Assembly: GCA_965649825.1 (NCBI GenBank)
Contig: OZ287710.1
Coordinates: forward strand, 1-64,000
DNA: 64,000 nt
Reading direction: 5' to 3'
Source of the DNA: Penicillus capitatus
Lineage: Eukaryota; Plantae; Chlorophyta
Below, piece after piece: positions 7,191 to 55,045 of the stretch; within the stretch, counting starts at the first letter, position 1, and each line of letters begins with the position of its first letter. The notes under the pieces are model-generated. The model made no database searches and was not told the DNA's origin. It saw only the letters and a program-made list of their open reading frames with translations. A program made the position numbers and the translations under genes.

Positions 7191-8384
7191 TTATTTCTTT
7201 CCGCCGTCTCCCCAAGAGGTATCGTAAGTGATAGTGGATTCCAGTTTTTTCGTGTCGTTCAGTTTGCGAACGGCCTTCATGAAATCCTCATGCACAGCAT
7301 AGTCTCGTTCATCTCGGATGGCATACATGCCAGCTTCGGTGCAGACATTACGTAGATCAGCTCCGTTAAAATTCTCGGCCAGCTTCACGACAGCTTCGTA
7401 ATCGATGTCCCCGTGTTTGCTCAGCGGCGCAGCATGGATCTTCAGAATCTCCATTCTGGCCTGTTCATTGGGCAACGGTATCTCGATTTTGCGATCCAGT
7501 CGTCCAGGACGCATCAGTGCAGGGTCCAATACATCGGGTCGATTGGTGGCCATGATCATCTTCACTTTACCCATCTTCTCAAATCCATCCAACTGACTCA
7601 GCAACTCCATCAACGTTCTCTGAATCTCACGATCCGCCGATGTCCCTTCGCTAAAACGCCGTCCGCCGATCGCATCGATCTCATCCATGAAGATGATGCA
7701 CGGTTCATGCTCTCGTGCATACTCAAACATCTCGCGTATAATTCTGGCACTCTCGCCAATGTACTTGTCCACGATGGCACTGGAAACGACTTTGAGGAAA
7801 TTCGCATCGATGTTGCTTGCGATAGCTCTGGCCAACAAGGTCTTGCCTGTTCCGGGCGGACCGTACAGCAAGACGCCTTTTGGCGGATTGATTCCGACAC
7901 GGAGAAAGAGCTCAGGATTCAGCAAAGGCAATTCCACGCTCTCCCTCAATTCCCGAATCTGATCGGAGAGGCCACCGATGGATGAGTAATCGACGTGACC
8001 CGGGTCTTCCGTCAACATGTTGAAGACGACGGGATCGACTTCGCGTGGGAGACAACGCATGATGGTGAGTGTCGTCATATCGAGAGCCACACGGGCACCA
8101 GATACGAGCTTCAGTTTGTCAAGCTTGCTGCGGACACCGACAACATAACGTGGTCCCGAACTGGCCTTAACGATGTAGCGTTCTTCGTCGAGTTGACGTA
8201 GTACTTCGCCAATAATCTGACCCACACTCTGTAGCGCCTTGAGCTCATCTTCGGATTTATCAAACTCGCGCTGGAGGTCGCGAATCTCGAGGCGCTGTTT
8301 GCGAACGCGCGTGTCGATCTCTTTGTGCTTGACAAGACGCTGACGATACTCAACCAGTGCTTGCTGTTTCTCGTTGTCGTCCAT
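7191..8384 (-). CDS. RPT4: 26S proteasome AAA-ATPase subunit Rpt4 (intronless)
   Basis: MDDNEKQQ start (ATG 8384). [35 protein letters not shown], Walker A GPPGTGKT, Walker [32 protein letters not shown]. Confidence 0.97.
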
Positions 8385-8512
8385 GACGCTTTGGATTCGA
8401 TGTACGACAACTGGAGGCAAAATGCGACCCTCAATGTGCGTGACGAGGGTTTTGAACACAGAAAAGATCTCTCAAAAGCAAAAGTGTTTGTGGAGATGAA
8501 GAGGGTATGCGT

Positions 8513-10699
8513 TCAACCGGAAGTGGATGAGAGAACAGGACTGACGGTCGTCTCCTCTTCAGATGTATGCTCTCTGCGACTGACCCGCATCATTAGGCCA
8601 TTTTTGGTGTGGATCGTCGCTCCTGTCTCCATTTGGACACTCTCGGGTGGCCCTGCTAATTCAAAACTAAACAGAAACAGCAAAGCGTAGATGAACACAG
8701 AGTTGCAGATGGTCTGCATGATATGCGTACTTGAATCTTCGGATGAGCATGGCGAGACAGACAGATGCCTCAAGGAAGGCAAACTGATCGCCGACGCATT
8801 TTCGTCCGCCTCCTCCGAAAGGTAGAAAGGCAAAATCCGATGCCTGTTCATCGGGATACAGTGAAAAACCGGAGAGATTCGGCTTATATCCTGCCCATTT
8901 CTGATCTGCACTCTTGGCAAGAAACGGTTCCCGAAATCGATCGGGGTTGAAGACCTCGGGATCTTTCCACAGATACGGAGATCGATGCAGATTCCACGTG
9001 GAGATGATAAGGTCCGCCCCAGGACCGATGGGGAATCCCTCTTCTGGACCATTGAGCCCACCAGGGAGTGTGTCTGCATCGATGGCCCTTCTGAGCAGCA
9101 CAGGTGGCTGAGGATAGAGTCGGAGCGCTTCGGCCAAAACCAATCTCAGATTCTCCATTTTCCCTATGGACTCCATGGTGGGTACATCGTCCTGGACGAC
9201 GCTATCCACTTCTTTGGAGAGGATTTGCATCCACGTACGATTCAGACCTAATAAATACAGAGCCCAGGTCAACACAGCTGCCGTCGTCTCATGACCAGCT
9301 ATCAGAAACGTCATTAAATCGTCCTTCAGTTGAAGATTTGAGTGATCTTCCCCACGCATCTCGATCAGAAATCGAAGGAGGGAAGGATCTGCCACCTGAT
9401 GTAGTTATGGAAATGGTAGTCTGTCCTAGGAGACAGATATGCAGCATACCTTGGAATAGTCCCTGTTCTGAAGCGCCTCTAAATCGTCTTCCTGAGCGGC
9501 CGCTTTGGCCGTGTCAATGAGGTAATCCAGATTGCCTTTTAGCATGTCGATCTGGGAATGGAAGCGGCGCAGTCGAGGGACGACATATCCTGCCCCTGGG
9601 ATATTCCAGTATGGAAAATAGAAAAGCGATCGATGTTCTGCCTCCTGCAGAACGGCGTAGACAGCCTACAAACATTTCGGACTGTACTCATGATCGATGC
9701 CATTTACCAGGAGACCTTGATCACAGGCGACTCTTTCGAAATGCTTCCAAAATCGAAATTGAAGACACCCAGTCCGATAATATCCAAAGCAAGGTTTAGA
9801 AACTCGTCCTCCATGTTCAGGACGACGGAATGACCCGGACTCGAATCGAGTAAGGTATTGAATTTGCGAGTGGTCTCCAGAGTGCAGCGACCGAACATGG
9901 CAGTCATCGTCCGAAGGTATTGATTGTGAAAAGCAGGAGTGATCACTCGACGACGGACCTTCCATGTTTCGATGTCAGCTGGTATCAATCCCTTTCCCAT
10001 AATGGGCTCCAGAATCTCAGCCAGAAGTCCCTTATTGTAGTTAAGCATGTTCTCCTAATAAGACGCTCGCTGCACACCTCTGTCTTCGTCCATTCGATGA
10101 CCCACCTTGAGAATGTATTTGGCCACAGTGGGATCAGAAATAATGAGAAAAGCCTTAGGACCAAACTCCAACTTCCATACGCCGCCAAGCTTGACAAACC
10201 TGCCAAATTTATGAGAAACGCAGTCATATGCAGCGCAACTGGGCTATGGTTATACCGACCAGTCCTGGAGAAAGAGGAAGAGCGGACGGCCCGATGTCAA
10301 ATCCGACATCTTGCCATCGCAAACAGGCACACTGGGACCACCGAGTTCTGGCTGAAAATAACCTCGACTGATCCGAGAGAGTGCGACAGAGAAGCCGTGT
10401 TTAAAATCCCCTTGCCCCACGGCGAAGGCATAAAGACAGAGGATCAGTCCTGGCGTCAGGAACAGACCCACACCCACTGCCAGCGATGTAAGGGCGTTGT
10501 GACAGACAAGATCGTCTCCACGCAGTCCTACGTCTCTGTCTTGAAGAGATGGGTGTATCGGGTCGCCGCGCAAACGTCTTCGCTGTCGAAAAGACTTCGG
10601 GATCGCGTTCCAGGAGACGGGACGGTGAGAACGCGATATCGGTGAATAGCCCAATGCATAGGGAGTGGGTGAACATCGCGATGAAGCGTGGCAGCGCAT
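8513..10699 (-). CDS. CYP97B: Plastid cytochrome P450 CYP97B (carotenoid hydroxylase family), 5 exons
   Basis: Spliced [55 protein letters not shown]-helix [25 protein letters not shown], heme motif [18 protein letters not shown]-terminal [10 protein letters not shown]. Start is ATG 10699 or in-frame ATG 10765. Confidence 0.93.
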
Positions 10700-12454: not shown

Positions 12455-13666
12455 ATGATGCTGCGGGCAGAGTCGCAAGTCACGACGACGACGACGACGC
12501 GTCTCAAAGATAGCCGAAAGTCAAAATCGACAGCGAAACTGCAGGACAGACCTTCTGCCGCCGCCGTAGACGAAGCTGTTCGCACGCCTCCGTCTTCAAA
12601 AGACACAGGCACTGCACAGCAGACCTCGACATCGGATTCGACTCAAAGTGTGCCGTCGTCCTCTCTTTCGGGACCATGCGAACGTCGACTCTGCAGTTCC
12701 TATCACCTCCCCTTGTCACGAATATCATCCGTCGAGGGGATGGAAATGGCTGCCACATCACTTATCGATTCCACAAATGTGGGAGAAGATTCGCGAAGAG
12801 GCGAAACACGACGCGGTGAGCGATGCATGACGATGTTCGGTGATGTGACAGCTGTGTGAGATAATGGTCTAGGACACGGAAGTGTGTTTGGCAAGCTTCT
12901 TGCATTCATCTGTGCTGGTGCACACATCTATTCCTAAGACAATGTCTTTCATACTAGCCAACAAATTGGCTAGCTCTACGTTACTGGGAACGCACTTAAT
13001 GAAACTCATTCAGGATGTCTACGAATGCGATCCAGTACGTCACATCTATAAAGAGTGAGAAGAGTGAGATGAATGTGTCAATAGACTATACTAGATGCCT
13101 GCTGTGCTGATATGCAAGCAGTGCAGGATCGAGATCCGGCTTGCGAGAAATACACCCAGTGCATGTTGTACTTTAAAGGCTTCCAGGCCGTGCAGAGCTA
13201 CCGAATTGCACATTGGCTATGGAATAATGACAGACGAGCATTGGCTATTGCATTACAGAGCCGCATCTCGGAAGTCTTTCATGTTGATATTCATCCAGCA
13301 GCTGTGATTGGCCGTGGCGTCTTTATGGATCACGCCACTGGCGTCGTCATCGGCGAGACGGCCGTTTTGCATGAGAATGTTTCCATGCTGCATCATGTCA
13401 CACTCGGAGGCAGTGGGACAGGAACAGGGAAACGTCATCCGACGATTGGACATGGCGTTCTGTTAGGGGCAGGGGTGAGCATCCTGGGACCCGTGACGGT
13501 GGGCTGTGGTTCAAAGATCGGAGCAGGAGCCGTCGTCGTGCAGAGTCTCCCAACACACTGTGTGGCCGTAGGGGTACCTGCGCGTGTCATTAAACGCGAT
13601 ACCTCCTGCGAGCCTTGCACCAGCATGGATCAATGTGAAGACTTTGTGCATAATTTTCAGATCTAA
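12455..13666 (+). CDS. SAT: Serine O-acetyltransferase (CysE/SAT), 4 exons
   Basis: Spliced MWEKIREEAKHDA|DTEVCLASFLHSSVL...LANKLA; DRDPAC, FKGFQAVQSYRIAHWLW, VDIHPAA, DHATGVVIGETAV, HPTIGHGVLLGAG hexapeptide repeats. Confidence 0.95.
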
Positions 13667-22810: not shown

Positions 22811-23548
22811 TCAGTCCTTTTCGCTGATGGCAACGAGATGCTCTTCGATTTGAGAAACGGATAGAACAGCAAAGTCTTTGCGTTCGGTATGGACAACACC
22901 CACTTCGATCTCCGTTGCCTTGAAGTCTTCAGCCAAGACATTTTGCAACGCGGCAATGGCTGTCTGAATGCACTCGTCTTTCGAGAATTCCTGATCTGCC
23001 TTGACTTTCTTTTCCAATAGGTTTGTTGCCTCCGTGTCCTTAGCACCGGCACTGCATGCACGGTAACCAGCATAATATCCAGCGGGGTCCACACGAAACA
23101 GCTGTGGTCCATGCTCATCATCGATTCCCAAAACGACTGTTGCGACACCGAGGGGACGCATGCTCGCATACTGTGTCTTGACCTGTGCCTTATCGGCAAT
23201 ACGTTTGGCCAAATAATCGACAGGAATTTCGTATCCAAAATCCATGCGAAACTGCGCAGCCATCTCTCGAGCCTCTTGCAATACCGCACGGGCGTCCGCC
23301 GTCAGGCCAGTCAAACAGACGCCAACAGATCGCGTCACTCGATGCAAGCTTGTCACACAGGAAGGTTCGATCAGTTTGTCCGGGACCTTTTTTTGTGTCA
23401 CCACGCAAACGGTGTCCTTTCCGCGAACTGCCACAGACGTATTGCCTACGGACTTCACAGCCTTGAAGGCATATTCCACTTGATACAGGCGGCCTTCGGG
23501 ACTGAAGATAGTGATGTATCGGTCGTAACCAGAACCGCCTCGGGACAT
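22811..23548 (-). CDS. PSMA6: 20S proteasome alpha subunit type 6 / alpha1 (intronless)
   Basis: MSRGGSGYDRYITIFSPEGRLYQVEYAFKAV...QKKVPDKL...YLAKRIADKAQVKTQYASMRPLGV...DFKATEIEVGVV. Confidence 0.97.
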   Translation of the reverse strand: MSRGGSGYDRYITIFSPEGRLYQVEYAFKAVKSVGNTSVAVRGKDTVCVVTQKKVPDKLIEPSCVTSLHRVTRSVGVCLTGLTADARAVLQEAREMAAQFRMDFGYEIPVDYLAKRIADKAQVKTQYASMRPLGVATVVLGIDDEHGPQLFRVDPAGYYAGYRACSAGAKDTEATNLLEKKVKADQEFSKDECIQTAIAALQNVLAEDFKATEIEVGVVHTERKDFAVLSVSQIEEHLVAISEKD

Positions 23549-23578
23549 GGCGCAGGAAGACGTTTTTAATATAATGAC

Positions 23579-24512
23579 ATGGATCGTCACCTAAACCTTC
23601 ACCGATTCTATGTGTCGACGCCTTTGCAGACGGGACGCACGAGCTACACGCTCGATCCCGTCGAAACGCGACATGCCTTGTCCGTTCTGCGTTTGAAAGA
23701 TGGCGATCCCGTCGAAATCTGCGACGGAAAAGGCAGACGAGTCACGGGTCTGGTCGAATGGATTGGACGGAGACCGAAATGTGTGAATGTAGGTATGGAT
23801 CTGTGGACGGTTTGTTTAATGACGACCTTGTGCAGGTTGTGTCCGAGGGAGATCCGATTGTCGAACCACGTCCTTCTCCAGAAATCGTTCTCTGTGTTGC
23901 GGGTGGCAACTTGAAAGGAGGACGGGGAGATTGGCTGGCAGAAAAGGCAACGGAGCTTGGAGTATCTGTCCTTGTCCCTGTTCTCTGTGAGAGATCGCAG
24001 GTACGTTTCGTCTGAACGATGATCTGTGTTGCTGCAAACAGAGCTTGCCTGGTACAGGCGTTAAGTAGAAACGGGAACGGTCGGTTGGAGAGATGGCGGA
24101 GAGTGTCTCAGGCAGCGATGAAACAGTGTCTGAGGACACACCAAATGGAGATAGAGAATCCACGATTCCTCTCCGATATGCATTTCCGAACACGACCGGA
24201 CGCCTTGCAGATTCTTGCTACCGCCGGAGGCCAACATCTAAGAACGGCGCTTCGCCATCGCGATTGTGCACCTTCAGAGTAGCTGACTAGAGGACGAACG
24301 GAACACGTGTAACGCGGTTTTCTAGGTGGCCAGATAGTATTGCCCTTTTCGTTGGTCCGGAAGGAGATTTCACTGAAGAAGAGAAGAAGAGATTGATGAT
24401 GCATGGTTGTGTGCCCGTATCTCTTGGACCAAATCGTTTACGTGTCGAGACAGCAGCTGTCGCACTTGTCAGCGCAGTACAGTTGCTGTTGTTCGATGAC
24501 AGCACCCATTAA
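23579..24512 (+). CDS. rsmE: RsmE-family 16S rRNA m3U1498 methyltransferase, 4 exons
   Basis: LHRFYV...RHALSVLRLKDGDPVEICDGKG, DWLAEKATELGV, RWRRVSQAAMKQCLR, IALFVGPEGDFTEEE, VSLGPNRLRVETAA after removing three GT-AG introns. Confidence 0.9.
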
Positions 24513-34694: not shown

Positions 34695-36312
34695 CTAATT
34701 GAGACCCCACAGCTCAAGCTTGATGATCTTGAACTCTTCTTTAGACGCAATGCATGGACTTCCAAACGTATCACAAAGACCACTGTGCCCATAGAGAAGG
34801 TCGGAATCTAACCAAATGGCAAAGTGTCCCGTACCACCCACCGCCAAAGAATCCGGAGATCCAAACATGAAGAAATTATTACGCACTTTAGAATCTTGTT
34901 TCCATGGATAACAAACACGATGCGGCTGCACGACACACACATGTACTCAGTCAGTCACGAGCTCCGACAAGGTGGATGATATGGGTACCTCGAGTTGGAA
35001 GACAAATGTTTCGCCCGTCCCGTAGAATCGCGGTCCCATCTTCCATGCTTCTGAACAGTATCCGCCGAAGATAAAATCCGAAGTGTCTTTCACTAACAAA
35101 ATAGTCGGAACAACGCCAGCTGCTTTTCTGTACAATGTCTGCAGGCTAATCCCATGCTTGTCAGTCGAATAGATCAAGTTCCATGAGGAATGACGAAAAC
35201 GTGGTGGTACAGCACTGGTGAGGCAACGAACGAGCTCTTCGTTGATCAGCTCACTCTTAGACGTCATTCCAGGAAAAGGTCCATCCGGAACAAGATGCTT
35301 GGGAGGAACCACCATTCCCTCAGCGGAAAAGGATGATGTTTGCTGCAGTTCTGGAATGACAACAGGTTCGACGGTTGGTCCCTTCGACGGCTGACTCTCT
35401 TCGACCGAAGCGGCACGAGAGGCAGCATCAGACCATGTTTCGATCTGTCGATTGATGAATGATTGTGCGGCGACGCTGGCTTCAAAGACAAGTTGTTTGA
35501 GTTTCGATCCACCCCCTCCGTCTTTCCACAAAACTTGCCAGACACTCGTACCAGATTGATGCTTTCGATCATCTGTACCCAGACTGTTTGCTTCTGTAGT
35601 ACCACCCCAGGAACTTCGTTGCAAGTTGGGGGGTCCCTTGGGTGCGACAGGCTTCTCATCGACTCCCTTCCGGGTCATTTTTCTTGGAGATGCCATATCT
35701 TCTGTTGCTTTTGATTTTCCAAAAAGGTAAGATGTCCAACTTTTGGATGCCAGTTTCTACAGGCACATGGAGTTTTCAGTCAGCTGTGCCAGACAGATCT
35801 CACCGGTTGGTGATTGAGAAGACCAACCTTTTCGGCCGATAAATTGGTCATACCGACGAACTGAGTGGCACCAATCCTCGCTTTAGATTCGAATACTTCG
35901 ATACACTCTGGATTTGACGAAAGTGAGGCTGGGACCTGGACACCGCACGAACATACTCTTCCAACCACCCCGTCGCGAAAGCACGCACTTTTCCTTTCTT
36001 AGTGTAAAGAATAATGGGATACTCCTCGTGTAGACGATAGTTGATGCTTTCCCGACTCTGGAGGGTGCGCGGCGTTTTTTCTTCTCGTGGGGTTTCAGCT
36101 TCTTCGACGTTACGAAAGCGACGCGAGATGGTCGACGTTAAGGCCTGTTCGAGTGTCTGTCCGCCCGTTTGTTTGAGCTGTTCTCTGAGACGGTAATTCT
36201 CTTGCAACAAGTATTTTTCGCGAAGACGATAGGCTTCAATGCGAGCAAGGGCTGTCGCTAATGATGCCTGGGTGTCTTCCAAAGTTGCTAACAGACCAGA
36301 CGGCGTTTGCAT
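34695..36312 (-). CDS. TLDc-domain (OXR1-like) protein with N-terminal coiled coil, 4 exons
   Basis: ORF 35848-36312 splices KKGK|VPASLS...NHQP|KLASKSWTSYLFG in frame into ORF 34947-35696. TLDc: WNLIYSTDKHGISLQTLY, IFGGYCSEAW, FYGTGETFVF, NNFFMFG...LAVGGTGHFAIWLDSDLLYGHSGLCDTFGSPCI. Confidence 0.88.
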
Positions 36313-36467
36313 GGTGATTCCGCGTACGGCGATCCTGAGTCTGCCGCATTATACAAATTATACTGCATCGAGGTCCCGAGGCGATCGATAAGCCAGCGGC
36401 CCTGCATGCGAAACGGGACCGATCAAGAAAGCGCATACGGTCGAAGAAAACAACCACCTTCGGCAAA

Positions 36468-39400
36468 ATGCTTTACTTCACTGTCATGGCGCTGTTGGTC
36501 GCACTGCGACACTGGGATGGCGCAATGGCGGCGACGGATTACTATACATACGATGGCCTTGGAAACAACGTCGCGAACCCATCCTGGGGGCAAGCAGCAC
36601 AATGCTCATGTCCTCTTGCTGATTTCGGTGTGTAGAGCGGCGAATACTGTTTTCTTGAGGGCACAGTTGGATGCCGCCGACGGCTACACGACCAACAATC
36701 TCGACGTGAGTGCGGTATTAGAAACCTCTTCTATTCACACATCCTTCTTCAGCACGCGAGCGCTCTGCCCAGCGCACGACTTGTCAGCACATCTCTAGAC
36801 TTGCCACCGTACAAGAGTCGCATACGGGCGGCAGAGCGCAGGACCGACTTTCTCACATTTATTGGCCAATTGATCAAACATGACATTGGCCTGCGAAAGG
36901 AAGACACGTCAGAGACAGAGCCAATCACTGTACCCTTCTGCGACGAGCACTTCGATAGAGACACGTGTGGTCTGGATGAAGCGGCGCTGCTTTCAGAGAC
37001 TCCCGAGACCATCGATTTTTACCGATCGGGATTCGAGATCGATGAGAACGGCGAACGGCAACAAATCAACAGAGCCACGGCGTTTCTCGACGGCGGAGCG
37101 GTCTACGGGCACGATTCGATTACGGCGAATCACTTGCGATCTTACGTAAACGGTAAACTGCGGACCTACAACGAACTACTGCCACTCAATACGATGGGAC
37201 TCCCAATACCAAATCCAGCAGGCAACGAACCACCAGTGAGTCTCAGGTAGACCTTCTTCGAACCTCTCTCGCTCACCGACCCGATTCTGTTTCTTGCAGA
37301 GTGGCCGGAGATCCTAGGGCGAATATGCATCCCGTTTTGCTGGCGCTGCATTCACTCTTCGTCAGAGAACACAACCGTCTGGCAGATGAACTTGCGAAGG
37401 ATGGCCCATTACTGTCCGACGAACACATTTATCGACGAGCGCGTCAGTGGGTCACTGCATACCTTCAGAAGATTTGTTACTATGAGTACTTGCCGGCAAT
37501 GGGCATCAACCTCCCCCTGTACAACGGTTATAATAGCAGCGTCAACGCAGGTAGATACCTCCTGCAATGATCATTGAGCATGGTTCTCGCATATAAGGGA
37601 TCGACAACTTCTTTTCGACGGCTGCTTTTCGTCTGGGCCACAGTCAGATTCTGGATGTCGTCTATCGCATCGATGATAAAGGGAGGGAAATTTCTGAAGG
37701 GCATCTGCTGCTTCATCGGTCGTTCTATAACCCGACGCTCGCACTCTCTGATGGCATCGAGCCTCTTCTCAGAGGAGCTGCGATTTCTCGACAAGCCGAA
37801 ATCTCGCCACAGTACTCAAATGCGTTGCAGAACTATCTGTTTGGCAACGCAGCTTTCGGGGGACGAGATCTCCTTGCACTTGATATTCAGAGAGGGCGCG
37901 ATCACGGACTGCCTTTCTACAATTCTGCACGTACACAACTCCAACTGCCTGCCAAGACCTCATTCGGCGACATCACGGGCGACTACCGTTTAGCTGCCAA
38001 ACTCGAAGAGATCTATGGAACAATCGACAACGTCGAAATGCCTTCTTGCACAAAGAAGCAAACCCGTGTGCATGCAGATGGATGCTTACATTGGAGGTCT
38101 CGCCGAAGATCCCCCTGCCGACCAAACGATGGGAGAGCTCTTCGCCGCTTCGTGGGTAGATCAGTTTCGCCGTATCAGAGATGGAGACCGCTTCTATTTC
38201 GAGAACACTGCCAACGGACTCTTTTCCGCAGACGAGGTATCAGCGATTCACGAAACAAGTGAGGATGGACGCCGATACGTTATGCATCCGCATACATCGT
38301 CTGCCTGCAGCATTGAGAGATATCATCTTGAGAAACACAGATATCTCTGTGCTGCCTGAGAATATCTACTTCAGCAACAGAACGCAGCCATGGCCTCCTT
38401 CTGCCGATGACACCGCCTCCCCTGTTGCGTCCGACACTTTGACGTCCAGATCTTCAGAAGATGCAGGAGATCACTTGACAGGAAAGGCGACAGAGGAGCT
38501 TGTACCATCCGTTTATACACTTCAATGGCAAATGGAAAGGGTAGGAACGACCGATTACATGCGTTTTACACTGATCTGTGCAGCTACGGGGTGGGTCGGT
38601 CTCGGATTTGCCAAAGGTCTGGCTGGACCCATTCAGCACGGAGCATGCACGTTCTATGTCTCCTTACTGCAGATGCTTCCAGTGCAATGATTGAAGCCGA
38701 CATCGTGATCGGTGCTGTAGAGTCAGGCGTCGCGAGAATTGCCGACTATTGGGCGACATCTTTCGCACAACCTCGTCTGGATACATCTTTGGGCGGAACA
38801 GACGATGTCGAGCTTGTGGAAGGATATGAAGTGGACGGCATCACCACTATTGTTTTCAGAAGAAAAGTCACGACGACGGATTCTTGGGACAGATCGATCA
38901 GCACAACATCACCGGTGCCTATCATTTTCGCCTGGCACTCCACCAATGACGATCTCCAATACCACTCGTGTGTCCACACAACGCACACATCTCGCTCTGT
39001 CTGAGTTCCCATCTGCAGTGTCACGCGTCGTGGAAAAACCCTTCTGGACTTGTATGGAAGACTCCCGTCTACATCTGCATCCTACTCGGAACGATCGGAC
39101 TCTCTTGACTTGGCGACGATCAGAAGAAGCATTGTATTGGACAGGAGTTCGGATCTCAGCCTGGGCTGGAACATCGTGGAAGGGGGTGAATGGCAATTGC
39201 TGAATGCCACAATCCGAATGAAAAGTACACGTGACATCGGCTTCGGCAGCAAAGGACGTTTTCTTTGCAGCAAGTGGTCTGAGCTTCGCTGCATTCGGAA
39301 TTGAGAGGGAAGATGGGACGTTTGGCGGATCCGATGTCATCAAGATCGAATCGAACGGACCCTATTGCACGGTGCACGATGCATGGGCCACAGACGGAGG

Positions 39401-42400
39401 GTCCATTGCGTATGACTACAGCATTGGTGGCAACGACGATTTAACAGATGCGCATTGCACGACGTCGGAAGGATACATCGAGGCAACATTCCTGCGCTTC
39501 ATCAATACAGGAGATATCGCAGATGTTCCACTCAACAAGAACGGTTTCACGGATGTCTTCTTTCTGTGGAACAGATCCGACATCGACGCCACCTTAGAGA
39601 CATCGGAGTATGTTTCCAATGAGGAATCCGTGAGATCGAGGACGTGTGCTAGGTCAAAATGGCTGAGTGTCGATTTCTTCGCCGCGGATGACTCGACAGC
39701 GCGGCAGGAATCTGACGATCTCTCCCCAGAGGATCCCGATTTAGAAGCGACTTCTCCGGCAACGGCGGTGCCAGGGGGAGAAACATCCCCTGATCTCTCG
39801 ACCACTTCTTCGAGTTTCCAAGGGAGCGTCACTGTCGATGAGGACACAGAGTATCGCATCTTTTACATCGTCAATGAACAAGACATCACCTTTCAGCTCT
39901 CTTTCAAAGGTGCCTTTCGACACACGTCTACGCTTTTCGTAAACAAAAAACAGGAACTGGATTCGTCGGGCTTGGAATTCCGGGAGCCGATCAAAATATG
40001 AACTCTGCAGATATCATCATCGCAGCCAATGACGGCGCTGGCGGCTGCAGTGTTGGAGATTACTGGTCGACGACGTTTGCAAAACCGGAGTTGGATACAG
40101 AAATTGGAGGAACAGATGATCTCAGAGATACGTCATGCACTGTGGAAAATGGCTACATGAACGCGACGTTTACGCGGTCCTACACAACCGACGACGATTT
40201 TGATCGGCAGTTGGAACGTGACGCGTCTGCAGCGACGTTCATCTACGCCTACCATCCATCATCGGACGGTATAGAGTACCATGGAGTATCTATGTAAGCC
40301 ATCAGCATGGATCCCGACCTCCTGTGCTCTGATACGTTTTTCAGGCGTGGGGTGATCGACATCGATTTGCAACCGACTACCAGCGATTCCGAGGAACTGC
40401 TGTCGGTGGAGTTCGACGAAACAGCAACGAAAGAACTCGCAGATGGATACACTGTAATGACTGCGCCTGGACGTCCGCCTTTCTGCTGACAGTGCGTCTG
40501 TTCAGATCTGGTGGAAAATTGTTCAAGACGAAGGATCAAGCACGACGCGCAGACGTCGTTCTCGGAAGCTGATGAACGATGCCACGTCATTAGATGGCGG
40601 AGGAGAAATCATTTTCAAACTTCAGCGCCAGTCCACTGGGTGGATGGGTTTCGGTATCGATCCTGCTGATGCCTCGGTCAACGGTATGCAAGAAACAGAC
40701 ATGTACATCGCATGGATCGATCCAGATTCGACTGTTCACATCATGGATGCCTGGTCTGTGGGTTTTATGCCTCCCACTCCTGATGCAGACCAAGGCGGAG
40801 AGAACAGCATCCTGCAATATGCCGGAGAAGAGAAAGACGGCATCACAACAGTCGTGTTTAAACGAAAGGTGGATACCGGCGACACATATGACCGCGTGAT
40901 CAAGAGCGCGACTCAAGTCCGTGAGGAGATCTGCTCGCTGCGTTCTTGGATGTCTTCGAGCCTTGCAGGATATTGTGTTTGCATATGGAGATGGAGATGG
41001 TTTGCCAGCTGGTGGTCATGGACCTTGCTGCCGCGGTAAAGATAAAGTGAACTGGAATGCGGATGGCGCGAGCGTGAGTAGTGGAGATGGAGATAGCCAA
41101 CCGAACGAGAAGCTAAAAGCGGCACATGCTTGGTTGATGCTCCTCGGTTGGGGCATCTTTGCAATTCTGGGCTTGATGGTCTCCCACATCGGCCGCCACT
41201 GGCGACGGTGGCAGGTATTGCACATTACATTCGAATGCATCGCGGTCTCCTTTTCTCTTCTTGGCCAAATTCTTGGCTTTTCGTACACAAAGGTGCGCGT
41301 CTTGTATCCGAAGCCTCATGAAAATGTCGGTCGGGTCTCGCAGGGGAGTGTTCGAGGGGCGCACGGAATTCTGTCTCTCCTCCTCTTGTTTGCATTGTTT
41401 CCTCAAGTTTGGATGGGCTACTACGCGAAGAAGACCGACTCTTTTCACTGGACAAAGCTCCACCGAGGATTGGGCTATTTCGTCGTGGGCATTGCCTGTT
41501 GGCAGATGTGGTTGGGGATGCTCCTCTATGACGTCGATACGCGTCTGGTCGATTGCTACTACGCTTGGCTCATCTCCGTTGGGGTGTACCACTGCCGTCC
41601 ATAAGTCTTATCTGTTTAAGGGAGCGCGTGTGCTTCTCAGGTATCGTTCCATTTCGCTGCAGACACTGTCAGTGTTTTCGAGATCAAGACACATCTGAAC
41701 AGGAAAGGATTTGACGTGGAGGATGCCGCAGCAAGAAAACAGAGAAAAATGTCTATGAAATCCAATGCCAACGGGTCTGATCCTTTTATCTGCTTTTGGT
41801 GAAAACTAAGAGCACGCTTTAGAAACGAAGACCTTGCTGCATCGTCTAACCTCTCACCAGAAAGGTCTTTTGTGTCACAGTCGTTGCTCTCTTTGTCTGC
41901 TGGACATCTGTCATGTCAGCTTATCGGAGAAAGAGCAGTCCTCTTCCCTCAAGGCATCGGACAGAAAGGATCGGAAGCAGACGAACAAAGTCGCACATCC
42001 GCGTTTCCGCGTCTTGTCTAATATGGTTGTCTATGTTGCAGGATGAAAAGACGTCGTCGCAGAACGGTATTTCATCTCACTCCTCACTGGAAACAGAATT
42101 TGAGTGAGATCGTGCAGATGGTCGAAACAAGATTGACACCCAGACCTTTGCGGAGTCCTTTGGCGCTGGAAAACAATGGACGGTGATTCATCAGAAAGTT
42201 TACGATATGTCGCGCTTGATCGATACGCATCCGGGTGGACCGGAACAGATCATCGACATTATCGGCAGAGACGGTACTGAGGGATTCGATGAACAACATG
42301 CCGACAGCGAAGCGGCTCATCGGTTTCTCCCGTTTCCCCTCCTCTGTATCTTACCGTCTTTGACAGGATGCTGGAGAAGGCGTGGATCGGAGACCTGATC

Positions 42401-42418
42401 GAGGCATCGGACTCTTAA
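36468..42418 (+). CDS. Multi-heme fusion: signal peptide - animal-type heme peroxidase - 4x DOMON - cytochrome b561 - cytochrome b5 (~21 introns, ~1600 aa)
   Basis: MLYFTVMALLVAL signal; YDGLGNN...WG|AANTVFLR; GQLIKHD; AGDPRAN; REHNRL; FRLGHSQI; DIQRGRDHGLP; DQFRRIRDGDRFYFEN. DOMONs ~38500-39030, 39130-39690, 39830-40370, 40450-41060. Four b561 His (AAHAW, VLHIT, GAHGI, KLHRG). b5 WTVIHQKVYD...HPGG...EQH. Every junction can be spliced in frame to TAA 42416-42418. Confidence 0.8.
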
Positions 42419-42519
42419 CCGTTGTATGGAAAGCATGCCAACTTGTCGTTGCCTTTGAATGCATTAGATGCGTGCATTACCGACGCGTACCTGTTCGCCG
42501 ACGCGCTTTTTGCCTCACG

Positions 42520-45500
42520 ATGGCAGAAAATTCTCCTGTTCAGTTAGTCGATGCAGATGGGGAATTTTGTATAAAGCAGATAGAGGAGTTTTCGCAATCC
42601 TCTAAGCTTGTCTCGGCAGGACGCAATTATCAAGTCGTAGCAATCATGGGACCGCAGAGCTCTGGAAAGAGCACGCTCGTGAATCACGTCGTACGGTTTT
42701 GCGTTCTCATGTCTTCTGTCTTTCGCAATGAGGCCCATAGTTTGGCACGGGTTTCCAAGAAATGGACGCGGTTTTGGGTCGACGCCAGACCACACGTGGC
42801 ATTTGGATCGCAAAGGCGCCAGATAATTCGGAACTGCTGACCATGGTATTGGATCTCGAAGGCACCGATGGTCGTGAGCGTGGCGAAGATGACACGACAT
42901 TCGAGCGACAGAGTGCACTGTTTGCTCTGGCTGTTGCCGATGTGGTGCTCATCAACATTTGGTGTCATGACATTGGACGTGAGCACGGTTCTGGAAAACC
43001 ACTCATCAAAACCATTCTTCAAGCAAACTGCCCTACATCATCATCGTTAACAGATGTGAGAAGTGCTTGTCGTTTGAATAGGTGAATTTGAAACTCTTTA
43101 CCCCGAGTACCAAAGACAAGAAGACGGTGTTGGTGTTCGTGATTCGTGACAAATCGAGAACACCGCTTGAGAAATTGGCTGAGGTTCTGAAACAAGACAT
43201 GTTGAAGATCTGGGATTCTATCATTAAGCCAATCGAATATCAAGAGACGCCTTTCTACGATTTTTTCGAAATCCGCTTCGAGGCTCTACCAAACTACGAA
43301 GAAAAAGAAGAAGACTTCAAGACCGAAGCAAAGGCTCTCCGCAAAAAATTCAGCCTCGAAGGTATGATGATTCTTTTCCGTGCAATGAGACATAAATAAT
43401 GTGAACTGACGAGGCGTTTAGGCCCAGAGACGTATGTTCTTAAAGATGATAATAAGCTTCCTGGCGAGGCTATTCCGCTAAGTACCTCCAAGGTGTGGGA
43501 AGTGATCAAGACGCACAAGGATTTGGATCTACCAGCCCATAAGGTATGGATGATGATGTCTTGTGGCCAGCGGTCTGTAAACTTGTGTACAGATCATGGT
43601 GGCAACGACACGCTGTTCTCAAATTCAGCAGGATCAATTGGAAGCGCTGAAGAAAGACGCGTGTTTTGGCACACTCGTGAAAGAAGCAGCCGAGAAGCTG
43701 CACGAAGACTTTGGAGAACGCATGACGTCATTGATCGATTCCTGCATCACGGGGTACGACAAACAGGCCCAAATATGTCCATAAGACCTTCTTCTGCAGT
43801 TATGATACGGATACCATGTTCTTCGACCCAGACATTCGTGCTGAAAAGAGAGAAGAACTCTTGGAGAAGGTCTGATCGGTGGACGAGGAGTGTCCATCTG
43901 TAGACATTCAATCTGTTGTGGCTACTAGGTGACCAATATGGTCAAGGGTCCCTATGAGCAGCAAATGAAGTATCTGCACGAGACGCTCTTTGCGGAAATG
44001 GAGAAGGACTTGAAAGTTGGAACGACTGTGGAAAAGAAGGGTTTCTCGGAATGCGCAGCTGCTTGCAAGAAAGCAAAGGTCGACTCTTTTGCCGAGAAGC
44101 AAAAACTCTTGCAGATACGTCACATCACTCTGGAATCCTCGGCATTCCTAACCGAGTTTGCCCGCGCTATCGACACACTGATCGACAAACTAAAGAAAGA
44201 AAAGGTTGATAACGAAAGAGACATCAGCCATCCATCAATGACGTGTCTTTGTTTTCTAGATGGTTGGTGTCAAAGAACAAGTCGAGAAGCTGTTTGACTC
44301 TGTCCTCTCTTCACCGATGGTCGGTCTGTTGGATACGGCGCCTTCCAATCTCTGGGATCAAGCGCGACACATTCTGTCATCGGCATTGGCAGCGGGATAT
44401 CAACTTAAGAGCAAAGAACTAACGGGTTATGAGCTCAGCGATCAGGAGTTGAAAACACTGGACGAGAATCTGAAAGGCATGGCCATCCAGCTCATGAAAG
44501 TCCATACCAAGGAGGCAGCGAACACAGTTCTCAGTCGAATGAAGGACAAGTGAGAAGGAGACTGTGCCGAGAAAGATTCGGCAGTTTGTGCTTTCAGATT
44601 CTCCAATGATTTCAGTATGGACGAAAATCAGCTGCCCAGAACATGGACGCCGAAGGACGACATTGCAAAGATTTCAAAGCATGCGCGTTTGGCATCAGCA
44701 GAGGTGCTGGCTCAGCTGACCATCTTCCAAGGGCAGGCATCCATTCCTGAAGCGCTCAAGATCGAAGAGTCCATTCGCGAAATGGCGAAGAGGGACTTTG
44801 AATCGACATCCACAGAGCCAAGAAGCGCATCGGCCAAGAATGGAACACTGGATATTCATGTGGCAGTGGAATGGCCAGACATCCCAGCTGAACACGTCCT
44901 GATTCAGCCAGCTGCTGTGCGTACTGCCTGGAAGCACTTTATGACAGAGACCAAACTCCAAATTACTCAAGTAATCTTGGGCTTTGAGGACAAGGCTCAG
45001 ATGCTGTGTGATAGGCAACGCTGACGCAACATGCCAATAAACTTGCAGGCAACCGATTGCCTCCTATCTGGGCAATCTTTGCCATGATGTTCTTGGGATT
45101 CAATGAGTTCATGGCATTGGTCTACAGTCCGATTATGGCACTGGCATTGATCGTGGTGATCCTGTTCTGTCGGAGTCTCTACATCGAAATGGATGTGGAT
45201 AACGAAATGCAGAAAGGCGCTTTGCCCGGGGCTATTTCTCTGGCTGGCAAATTTGTGCCTTCTGTCAAGAGCATCTCAAACAAATCCATCGATTCTGTGA
45301 TGCAGTTCATCAAGCAGGAAGAGGCTGAACCGAACAGAACGGCAGATGGTACATCTGGCGCAGCATCGTCCTCCTCATCCCAACCCGAAGGACTGCGTCA
45401 GCGCATTCCTCCTGCCCAAAGTCTATCAGCGCGATTGCATTGTGTCTGTCGTCTATATTGTGTGAGATGCAGGTGCCGTAGAGGAATCGCAAAAGCAGGA

Positions 45501-53127: not shown

Positions 53128-53212
53128 ATTCGAGTGAAACTTCAGCGGTGTGCTTTCATTTCACAATGCAATTCGCAACGGTGCGCGCACCGTTCATATT
53201 GTCGATCCAAAC

Positions 53213-55045
53213 ATGCCCATCGTCAGTGTCGGCCGAGACAAACTCTTTGCGGCGCTGGGCGAGACGTTCACCGACGATGCGTTCCAGGACCTTTGTTTTG
53301 AGTACGGGATCGAACTGGATGACGTCACGTCAGAAAAGGAGATGGCACGCAAGGAACTGAACCTCAAAGATGGCGATGCCATTTCCAGCGTTGAAGCCAG
53401 CGAAGAAGTGATCTACAAGATCGACATCCCAGCCAACCGCTATGACATGCTTTGTCTGGAAGGCATTGCCCGTGCCTTGAACATTTTCAAAGAAAAGGCG
53501 GTCCATGTGCATTATGATGTGACGTCGATGAGCGAGGGGGTGCAGCAGATGGTGGTGCATCCACAGGTGGCACTTGTACGTCCCTTTGTCGTCTGTGCCA
53601 TTCTGAGGGGTATTCAATTCGACCAGCAGCGCTACAACAGTTTCATCGATCTTCAAGACAAGTTACACCAAAACCTATGTCGTCATCGAACCCTCGTGGC
53701 GATCGGAACGCACGATCTGGATGCCATTCAAGGGCCCTTCAGTTACGAAGCGCTACCGCCTGAAGAGATCGAATTCGTGCCGTTGAAACAGACTACAAGC
53801 TTCAAGGCAGGAGATTTGCTGCAATACTATGTAGAGAACGACAAGAAGCTGGGAAAGTATGTGCCGATCATTCAGGACAGCCTGGTGTATCCCGTCATCT
53901 ATGATGCCAATCGAACGGTGCTCTCGTTGCCTCCCATTATCAACGGTGCCCATTCGGCCATTTCGCTCGACACTAAGAATGTCTTCATCGAGTGCACGGC
54001 CACAGATATCACCAAAGCCAACATTGTTCTCAATACCGTCTGCTGTATGTTTTCTGAGTACTGCTCCACACCGTTCGAAGTGGAGCCCGTCGAGGTGACG
54101 GATGTGACGGGCAAGAAGCATATCTACCCAGATCTGAGCTACCGTGCCATGGACGTGTCAGCGGCGTACATCAACAGGACGATTGGCGTCGACCTCTCTG
54201 TCCAAGACATCGTCCAGTACTTAGAGAGAATGACCCTTGAGGCCGTCGGCAATGAAGATGGGACCATCCGTATCAAGATTCCGCCGACCAGGAGTGACAT
54301 CTTGCATCCTTGTGATGTCATGGAGGACGTAGCCATTGCCTATGGATTCAACAACATTGCTGAGACAGTGCCCACGACGGCAACACAGGGCAGGGAGCTT
54401 CCCCTGAACCAGCTGACAGAACTCATCCGTTTGGAATGCGCCATGGCTGGCTACACTGAGATTTTGACCTGGAGTCTCTGTTCCCACGCCGATAACTTCG
54501 AACGACTGCTGAGAATCGACGATGGTACGACAGCCGTCTGCATCGGCAATCCCGCCACGGCCGAATTCGAAGTCTGTCGCACGTCTCTTCTCCCCGGCGC
54601 TCTCAAAACACTCGGTGCCAGTGGCAACGTCCCAAAGCCGATTAAACTCTTCGAGATCTCAGACGTGGTGCTGCTGAGCGATGAAAAGTCCGTCGGTGCC
54701 AAAAACGAACGCCGCCTCGTGGCCGTGCACTGCAACAAAGATTCAGGATTCGAAGTGATCCATGGACTGCTCAATCGATTAATGGATATCATGGACATTC
54801 CCCTGAGTCCAGAGCAGAATGCTGGAGGCCTCTCTTATGCCTGGAAAGCGGAGGATCATTCCACATTCTTCCCAGGAAGACATGCCACGGTGCATCTGTG
54901 CGAGAAGCCCGTTGGCGAATTCGGTGTTGTCCATCCAGATGTACTGGGTCAATTCGGAATCGATTATCCAGTGTCGGCCGTCGAACTCAATCTCCATCCA
55001 TTCTGTTTCGATCAATTCCACAAACCATTCGAGACTCGGCTCTGA
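53213..55045 (+). CDS. FARSB: Cytosolic phenylalanyl-tRNA synthetase beta subunit (intronless)
   Basis: MPIVSVGRDKLF...FEYGIELD, YKIDIPANRYDMLCLEG, FIDLQDKLHQN, PPTRSDILHPCDVMEDVAIAYGFN, GEFGVVHPDVL. Confidence 0.97.
   Translation: MPIVSVGRDKLFAALGETFTDDAFQDLCFEYGIELDDVTSEKEMARKELNLKDGDAISSVEASEEVIYKIDIPANRYDMLCLEGIARALNIFKEKAVHVHYDVTSMSEGVQQMVVHPQVALVRPFVVCAILRGIQFDQQRYNSFIDLQDKLHQNLCRHRTLVAIGTHDLDAIQGPFSYEALPPEEIEFVPLKQTTSFKAGDLLQYYVENDKKLGKYVPIIQDSLVYPVIYDANRTVLSLPPIINGAHSAISLDTKNVFIECTATDITKANIVLNTVCCMFSEYCSTPFEVEPVEVTDVTGKKHIYPDLSYRAMDVSAAYINRTIGVDLSVQDIVQYLERMTLEAVGNEDGTIRIKIPPTRSDILHPCDVMEDVAIAYGFNNIAETVPTTATQGRELPLNQLTELIRLECAMAGYTEILTWSLCSHADNFERLLRIDDGTTAVCIGNPATAEFEVCRTSLLPGALKTLGASGNVPKPIKLFEISDVVLLSDEKSVGAKNERRLVAVHCNKDSGFEVIHGLLNRLMDIMDIPLSPEQNAGGLSYAWKAEDHSTFFPGRHATVHLCEKPVGEFGVVHPDVLGQFGIDYPVSAVELNLHPFCFDQFHKPFETRL

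Follow-up and report, generated by a model that had tools for sequence, protein, structure and literature searches.

Introduction

Electrons are known to leave eukaryotic cells by way of the NOX, DUOX and FRO flavocytochromes and by way of ascorbate-fed proteins of the b561 and CYBDOM type. A CYBDOM protein has five helices with two pairs of His and an apoplastic DOMON domain whose heme is held by Met and His, and the plant member HYP1 passes electrons outward through three b-hemes (PMC10784544). Here we describe a gene from the green alga Penicillus capitatus, located at 36468-42418 on the + strand of the first 64,000 nucleotides (nt) of contig OZ287710.1 (assembly GCA_965649825.1; this whole stretch is called the window below), in which a peroxidase, DOMON domains, a b561 module and a cytochrome b5 are very probably joined as a single fusion gene. 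The best explanation of its product, to which we give a probability of roughly 0.45, is a single-chain heme relay, that is, a type-I-like membrane protein whose ecto-peroxidase would be fed by cytochromes.

One open frame across 22 exons

Once 21 introns are spliced out, the fusion gene reads as an open frame from the ATG at 36468 to the TAA at 42416-42418, with 22 exons and a product of 1629 amino acids (aa; 1629 codons plus the stop). The introns measure 44-60 nt, and 20 of them are GT-AG and one is GC-AG. In a three-frame translation of 36300-42600, the peroxidase, DOMON, membrane-helix and b5 motifs are scattered across all three frames. As a control for chance, we determined the minimum number of 40-65 nt GT-AG introns that would keep a frame open across the span. 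On the real strand this minimum is 15, against 32 for its reverse complement, and first-order Markov simulations need at least 33 or offer no path at all. The gene model was built first by ab initio dynamic programming and then corrected against homologues and against an orthologous locus, L001. An earlier note on this DNA, referred to here as the original prediction, had given the same coordinates, about 21 introns and the same domain order, all of which are borne out by the 22-exon open frame and by Pfam searches of the spliced product. The features of the gene are as follows.

36468-36589, 36636-36705, 36753-37246, 37300-37550, 37598-38031, 38078-38258, 38311-38616, 38673-38967 (+): exons 1-8
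39019-39224, 39271-39607, 39668-39909, 39954-40293, 40345-40453, 40506-40916, 40969-41292 (+): exons 9-15
41344-41583, 41641-41774, 41823-41864, 41920-41989, 42042-42066, 42118-42322, 42367-42418 (+): exons 16-22
36590-36635 (+): intron 1, GC-AG (GCAAGC...GTGTAG), 46 nt, at the position and phase of the GT-AG intron 1 of L001
41293-41343 (+): stop-free in-frame intron inside the b561 module; its removal joins FSYTK to GSVRGAHG, without gaps against the Caulerpa sequence FSYTKGSFRTAHS
36468-36533 (+): predicted signal peptide, MLYFTVMALLVALRHWDGAMA followed by A; first ATG of the frame, hydrophobic core and A-x-A site, as read from the sequence
36540-38354 (+): animal-type heme peroxidase, residues 25-532, Pfam An_peroxidase
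38511-39037 (+): DOMON1, Pfam DOMON, with Met625 and His717 present
39155-39590 (+): DOMON2, degenerate, with the Met and His ligand columns both substituted
39846-40351 (+): DOMON3, with Met995 and His1089; missing from the L001 orthologue
40448-41040 (+): DOMON4, membrane-proximal, with Met1190 and His1283; 70% identical to the L001 copy
41119-41661 (+): b561-type five-helix module, with His1319, His1351, His1381 and His1414
41662-42152 (+): predicted cytosolic linker, a post-membrane motif and then a Lys/Arg/Ser-rich stretch from mini-exons 18-20
42153-42397 (+): cytochrome b5, with His1582 in HPGG and His1605 as the second His
42416-42418 (+): TAA stop, immediately behind the last b5 helix (MLEKAWIGDLIEASDS, then the stop)

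A search for homologues of the C-terminal 506 aa returned a single match, P0121, at 59% identity, which lies on a 58.8-kb Logan contig (SRR33785045) at locus L001. Homology-guided spliced alignment at this locus gives an orthologue of 1442 aa with 56% identity, and nine exon lengths are identical between the two genes (70, 494, 251, 434, 181, 306, 295, 240 and 205 nt), so that intron positions are conserved. The L001 orthologue does not have intron 14 of the fusion gene, and a GC-AG intron at L001 helped to settle intron 1 of the fusion gene as GC-AG; removal of this intron gives NPSWGAANTVFLR, which aligns to homologues without gaps. The stop-free intron at 41293-41343 likewise has an L001 counterpart at the equivalent place.

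Three of the domain junctions lie within single uninterrupted exons and therefore need no argument from splicing: exon 7 (38311-38616) spans the one from peroxidase to DOMON1, exon 9 that between the first two DOMONs, and exon 15 (40969-41292) that from DOMON4 into b561. The sole junction resting on inferred splicing is that between b561 and b5 (introns 16-20), and it is here that a pair of transcripts, one for peroxidase-DOMON-b561 and one for b5, could have been turned into a fusion by the modelling. Such a reading would draw on the five inferred introns and poorly conserved mini-exons that this one non-exonic junction needs, and on the Ostreobium annotation, which has a 241-aa protein with b561 only. 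Against it, introns 16-20 (48-57 nt) are of the same class as the other introns of the gene, which uniformly fall at 44-60 nt; intron 16 splits membrane helix 5, which is completed in exon 17, an exon that also holds HFAADTVSVFEIKTHLNRKGFDVED, a motif shared with another relative and 65% identical in L001; no start codon usable in frame lies in the b5 exon itself, and an ATG close by, at 42043, runs into a stop inside that exon; and the frame is kept in the L001 orthologue. Moreover, b561 is joined to b5 in seven independent predicted proteins, among them two of Cymbomonas and those of Caulerpa, Sorochytrium, Paraphysoderma and Nowakowskiella, which run colinearly through b561, linker and b5; the alignment to the Caulerpa, Cymbomonas, Sorochytrium and Paraphysoderma proteins shows this for all three segments. 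An uninterrupted frame at a further locus, L002, joins b561 to b5 as well. Two transcripts are on this evidence highly improbable, and the claim of a single-chain fusion made in the original prediction is upheld by the three within-exon junctions, the frame of the orthologue and the independent colinear relatives.

Several candidate junctions were discarded while the model was corrected. Ab initio splicing alone produced a wrong 128-nt linker intron and a 64-nt intron that deleted the first strands of DOMON2, and it missed the intron at 41293-41343; all of this was put right with the help of homologues and L001. A 28-nt GT-AG version of intron 1 was rejected in favour of the 46-nt GC-AG intron at the position and phase of the L001 intron, and a putative in-frame intron at 40521-40568 was rejected because homologous coding sequence is kept in L001. 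A listed open reading frame at 40921-41604 runs through the 51-nt intron at 41293-41343, such that annotation based on open reading frames would add 17 false residues to a b561 loop. GC-AG introns seem unusually common in these genes, making up one of 21 in the fusion gene and three of 16 in L001 (8430-8469, 9366-9408 and 10778-10818), and donor sites are otherwise weakly conserved (GTNNNN). The L001 introns are 39-61 nt long except for one of 103 nt. This 103-nt intron of the homology-guided model stands where manual reading finds, in its place, a 42-nt stretch of the same length and phase as a linker mini-exon of the fusion gene.

The peroxidase and DOMON domains

The predicted signal peptide, whose counterpart at the N-terminus of the L001 orthologue is MKTQQKLLALFCFLAWTNA, is followed by a peroxidase domain that matches Pfam An_peroxidase (PF03098) at E 7e-131 and 437.8 bits (cut-off 25) over profile positions 1-525 of 530. 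Among solved structures it comes closest to 8S6C (E 1e-97) and to peroxinectin A of Dictyostelium (6ERC, E 6e-84). The distal Q103 and H107, the catalytic R235 and the proximal H327 are all present, aligned with GQFLDHD, AGDVRSNE and YRVGH of 8S6C, and together the full-length profile match and these catalytic residues assign the domain to the peroxidase-cyclooxygenase superfamily. K106 and M238 sit where Asp and Glu form the heme esters of mammalian-type enzymes (MPO/LPO), and the same substitutions are found in the L001 orthologue.

The DOMON family (PF03351) matches the spliced product over four stretches at E 4e-76. Two ligand columns, Met in G-M-x-x-A-D and His in Y-H-G, are filled in DOMON1, DOMON3 and DOMON4; they were equated by motif position, rather than by direct alignment, with the DOMON axial pair M90/H174 of plant HYP1 (PMC10784544). 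DOMON2 by itself scores 34.8 bits against a Pfam cut-off of 32.7, and its ligand columns are empty in the L001 orthologue too. The presence of DOMON3 (39846-40351) and intron 14 (40917-40968) in the fusion gene and their absence from L001 indicate that an entire DOMON, and also an intron, were recently gained or lost within one gene. With one heme in the peroxidase, three in the DOMONs, two in b561 and one in b5, the predicted total is seven, in agreement with the count of about seven made in the original prediction, DOMON2 being without both presumed ligands.

The membrane module, linker and cytochrome b5

The membrane module has the four His expected of a b561, as had been claimed for it, and they are invariant across eight family members; they sit on four consecutive helices, as two presumed bis-His pairs. 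When a family profile was compared with the PDB, the top solved match was human DCYTB (5ZLE, E 3.8e-4), whose His residues, which we take to be its heme ligands, line up with the four His columns of the profile; phmmer of the module itself against the PDB found no match. The L001 module scores 17.7 bits, under the Pfam Cytochrom_B561 cut-off of 23, and two relatives score above it (P0043 at 31.7 bits and P0008 at 30.7 bits). Hydrophobicity gives four strong segments and a weaker fifth, and AlphaFold2 models the b561 exon as five helices at pLDDT 85-91. When this exon was compared exhaustively with 1.84 billion representatives, only 31 proteins matched at E <=0.001, consisting of orthologue fragments, members of the fusion family and ordinary DOMON-b561 proteins.

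Following the membrane module, the predicted cytosolic linker contains the motif DTVSVFEIKTHLNRKGFDVED, which is 65% identical in L001 and occurs also in P0245. The cytochrome b5 matches Pfam Cyt-b5 (PF00173) over residues 1557-1623 (E 1.2e-15, profile 7-73 of 74), with the HPGG motif (H1582) and the second His (H1605) just as the original prediction had them, and the L001 orthologue ends at the equivalent point with MLAALLLGSIAD and a stop. Lys and Arg are abundant in the loops that follow helices 1 and 3 and in the tail beyond helix 5. The topology we infer places the peroxidase and the DOMONs, behind a signal peptide, outside the cell or in a lumen, and leads through five helices to a Lys/Arg-rich linker and b5 in the cytosol; the cytosolic position of b5 follows from the Lys/Arg-rich segments and from the NAD(P)H-dependent module that comes after b5 in relatives. 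As a prediction, the arrangement of ecto-peroxidase and cytosolic b5 proposed earlier is thus supported by the signal peptide, the five helices and the Lys/Arg-rich segments.

Relatives and the flavin module

Proteins from Caulerpa, Cymbomonas, Sorochytrium and Paraphysoderma have the same domain order as the window protein and align with it colinearly at 28-39% identity. They differ in carrying one to three DOMONs and a fused cytochrome-b5-reductase module, whereas the window protein and the L001 orthologue end after b5. Cyt-b5 is followed by both FAD_binding_6 and NAD_binding_1 in Caulerpa P0001 (g480.t1), Cymbomonas P0003 (CYMTET_50709) and Sorochytrium P0043 (RI367_002116), and by FAD_binding_6 only in Cymbomonas P0007 and Paraphysoderma P0102. 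A tblastn search with three such b5-reductase modules found none in the 64-kb window or in the 21-kb L001 locus. The original prediction had b5 replacing the flavin module of DUOX; this does not hold for the family, as the closest full-length relatives have b5 plus an FAD/NAD module. We infer instead that b5 is the usual entry heme of the family and that, because the FAD/NAD module of the relatives is missing here, the lineage without a fused reductase relies on one encoded elsewhere.

The form that ends in b5 is found in a second lineage, judging from L002 (Logan SRR27504669, 2546 nt), in which an uninterrupted frame with an open 5′ end encodes two DOMONs, b561 and b5, ends without a reductase module at a stop about 60 residues past b5 and is trailed by about 270 nt; the sequence missing upstream may encode a peroxidase. 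A further product, P0249, called at 1136 aa on ENA contigs of 3.9-4.2 kb, has a peroxidase, two DOMONs and b561. Across the family the number of DOMONs ranges from one to four, and members occur in green algae, including unicellular ones, and in chytrid and blastoclad (zoosporic) fungi. This occurrence in non-siphonous algae and in fungi argues against a role confined to siphonous algae.

In Ostreobium and Caulerpa, public gene models of the family appear to be fragmented or merged. CAD7700700.1 of Ostreobium quekettii (P0243, 241 aa), which consists of the b561 module and linker only, looks like a fragment of an orthologue. Caulerpa g480.t1 (P0001) has an Spt4 zinc-finger ahead of a peroxidase whose Pfam match begins at profile position 61 of 530, and this front end is probably a merged neighbouring gene. 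Public records label the relatives merely as "hypothetical protein" or "heme peroxidase", and no description of a peroxidase-DOMON-b561 fusion was found in the literature searched, whose coverage leaves out many subscription papers. The novelty suggested in the original prediction therefore stands in part: no describing paper was found, but the same or a fuller architecture is already present, unnamed, in public protein sets. The architecture is undescribed yet shared with a few algae and early fungi, and so is not unique to this gene.

A proposed cytochrome-fed ecto-peroxidase and its alternatives

In the single-chain relay that we favour, b5 would sit in the cytosol and receive its electrons from an NAD(P)H-cytochrome-b5 reductase that is the product of another gene. 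Electrons would pass from b5 to the inner and then the outer b561 heme and on to DOMON4, from there to DOMON3 and DOMON1, and finally to the peroxidase heme. DOMON3 and DOMON1 would probably act as tethered mobile carriers on linkers rich in Ser, Thr, Pro and Asp rather than as parts of a rigid wire, as the length of these spacers, the ligand-less DOMON2 and the variable number of DOMONs suggest. The cytochrome chain would then serve as the reducing substrate for Compounds I and II of the peroxidase, and cytosolic NAD(P)H would ultimately supply the electrons that turn H2O2 or a hydroperoxide, outside the cell or in a lumen, into water. That the relay runs outward is probable: the path from b5 through b561 to the DOMONs follows from the CYBDOM precedent, and the direction from the NAD(P)H-dependent reductase fused after b5 in relatives. 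Peroxide reduction as the end reaction is proposed more tentatively, from typical potentials. The hemes of b561 and DOMON proteins typically lie at about +50 to +170 mV, far under Compounds I and II (about +1 V) and above both the Fe3+/Fe2+ couple of peroxidases and the O2/superoxide couple, and it is for this reason that peroxide reduction is favoured.

A number of observations weigh against this reading. The ligand-less DOMON2 lies between DOMON1 and DOMON3, which makes a rigid linear wire unlikely. Between b561 and b5, the route through the mini-exons (41775-42117) is a predicted one, and identity of the linker to L001 falls to 34%. The b561 module of the fusion gene has no match to Pfam Cytochrom_B561 (PF03188) even at E <=1, and Foldseek of the b561-exon model against the PDB returned generic helical bundles alone (E >0.1). 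Helix 5 is moderately hydrophobic, under the threshold of 1.4, and if it does not span the membrane, b5 would lie outside. Finally, ascorbate is the normal donor of b561 proteins, and with it the chain might not need b5 as its point of entry.

This last point can be developed into an alternative in which ascorbate feeds b561 and b5 is a regulatory, sensing or docking domain or the donor to another partner. Ascorbate is the specific donor of the characterised b561 and CYBDOM proteins (PMC10784544), the cytosolic loops carry basic residues, and this lineage is without a fused reductase. Nevertheless, b5 followed by a b5-reductase module, as in the relatives, is a known electron-input pair, and b5 is retained with both His in the window protein and in the L001 orthologue, so we regard ascorbate as the feed, with b5 in another role, as very unlikely. 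The opposite end of the chain offers a different choice, namely a metal reductase of the CYBDOM type in which electrons leave at the DOMON hemes for Fe(III) or Cu(II) chelates and the peroxidase is an independent passenger. HYP1 reduces ferric and cupric substrates (PMC10784544), and the nearest relatives of the membrane module among the 1.84 billion representatives are DOMON-linked b561 proteins; the linkage of peroxidase, DOMON and b561, however, is kept across green algae and fungi and lies within single exons here, which points to functional coupling and makes a passenger peroxidase distinctly unlikely.

It is also conceivable, though unlikely, that the protein is a generator and a user at once, as in DUOX, with the chain reducing O2 outside to superoxide or H2O2, the site being a DOMON heme or, by way of Compound III, the ferrous peroxidase, and the peroxidase using the product for cross-linking of walls or wound plugs or for defence. 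The layout matches, with an ecto-peroxidase, a transmembrane di-heme module and cytosolic entry of reductant, and the NAD(P)H/FAD module of relatives, the intact catalytic residues of the peroxidase and the siphonous algal host all fit. Yet typical b561 and DOMON potentials are too high for efficient reduction of O2 or of a ferric peroxidase, the DOMON hemes would be six-coordinate with Met and His, the Asp and Glu whose links to heme favour halide oxidation are missing, and the family occurs in unicellular algae and zoosporic fungi as well. Taken in outline, the mechanism of the original prediction is plausible, but generation of H2O2, which its comparison with DUOX would imply, is on these typical potentials probably not what the chain does.

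Extended to the relatives, the cytochrome-fed reading suggests, although we would put its chances below even, an ancient, undescribed family of transmembrane redox enzymes in eukaryotes, independent of NOX, in which cytosolic NAD(P)H directly drives an ecto-peroxidase through six to seven b-hemes, acting as a peroxide reductase or as a new oxidase that handles reactive oxygen species, and in which the bryopsidalean branch has uncoupled the reductase.

Genomic surroundings

The window consists of nuclear DNA in which introns are very short and genes lie close together. Synteny around the fusion gene is conserved at L001, where the order is that of the window: a TLD-domain gene (-), then peroxidase, DOMONs, Cyt-b5 and an RHD3/Sey1 gene. 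Upstream, on the minus strand, the neighbours are the TLD-domain gene and a small unknown open reading frame (34947-36312 in the window, 5265-6636 in L001). Downstream, the RHD3/Sey1-type GTPase gene starts on the same strand 101 nt past the fusion-gene stop (gap 42419-42519, ATG 42520), a spacing of about 150 nt in L001, and the 101-nt spacing means that the untranslated regions must be very short or overlap. Two loci of ENA ERZ26696514, L006 and L007, are colinear with the window downstream of Sey1 and end within the Sey1 gene.

Genes named by eye, on the basis of their translations, elsewhere in the window are listed here; several of them consist of one long exon, in contrast to the fusion gene with its many introns.

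7191-8459 (-): 26S proteasome AAA-ATPase subunit
8667-9395 (-): cytochrome P450, C-terminal exon
13112-13666 (+): serine acetyltransferase-like
22811-23590 (-): proteasome alpha subunit
53150-55045 (+): PheRS beta, single exon

Rfam and tRNA scans of the 64-kb window found none. For PheRS beta the closest named relative is Bryopsis sp. KO-2023, at 70% identity; identity is 75% with Caulerpa lentillifera g565.t1 and reaches 95% with an ENA ERZ26696514 protein. By these matches the window belongs to a bryopsidalean green alga, a siphonous ulvophyte. The organismal distance is similar for L001 and Caulerpa (PheRS 77% and 75%), yet the fusion protein is 56% identical in the former and about 39% in the latter, and because of this much lower identity at a similar distance the Caulerpa fusion protein may be a paralogue.

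Comparison with known systems

The closest described architecture is that of the CYBDOM proteins (HYP1/CRR in plants, FRRS1/SDR2 in animals), which share with the fusion protein a signal peptide, an extracytosolic Met/His DOMON, five helices, two pairs of His and the outward transfer predicted here. The fusion protein differs from them in having four DOMONs, one of them degenerate, an N-terminal peroxidase that is the likely terminal acceptor, and a C-terminal b5 that is the likely entry, replacing or supplementing ascorbate.

DUOX, of which the original prediction had called the protein an analogue, also has an ecto-peroxidase of the same superfamily (DUOX1 7D3E, E 1e-42) fused to a transmembrane di-heme module fed from the cytosol. 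The membrane module of the fusion protein is, however, of the b561 type and not a NOX ferric reductase, its peroxidase retains the catalytic residues, and Pfam searches of the full protein at E <=0.01 found no NOX ferric-reductase domain, EF hands, FAD_binding_8 or NAD_binding_6. By domain content the fusion protein is not a member of the DUOX family, and the analogy reduces to a likeness of logic, no NOX-type domain having been found.

Two soluble systems offer partial parallels. In cellobiose dehydrogenase (CDH), a DOMON-like domain with a Met/His b-heme shuttles electrons on a flexible linker to an external redox enzyme, and the relatives of the fusion protein have weak CDH-cyt Pfam matches; the enzyme differs in being soluble, in having its own flavin dehydrogenase as the electron source and in the absence of a membrane module or peroxidase. 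Cytochrome c peroxidase is alike by a proposed functional analogy only, in that a cytochrome gives single electrons to Compounds I and II, but it belongs to another peroxidase superfamily and works with separate soluble partners rather than across a membrane.

What sets the present protein apart from all of these is a CYBDOM core joined to an intact peroxidase outside and a b5 inside, the inner part being, in relatives, the full set of NAD(P)H-b5 reductase and b5. Should the chain function as one, it would add a third transmembrane design for outward electron transfer and would be the first to connect a peroxidase straight to the reducing power of the cytosol. It would then bear on extracellular H2O2, wall chemistry or metal redox in algae and zoosporic fungi, and the protein would provide a compact natural multi-heme wire for study.

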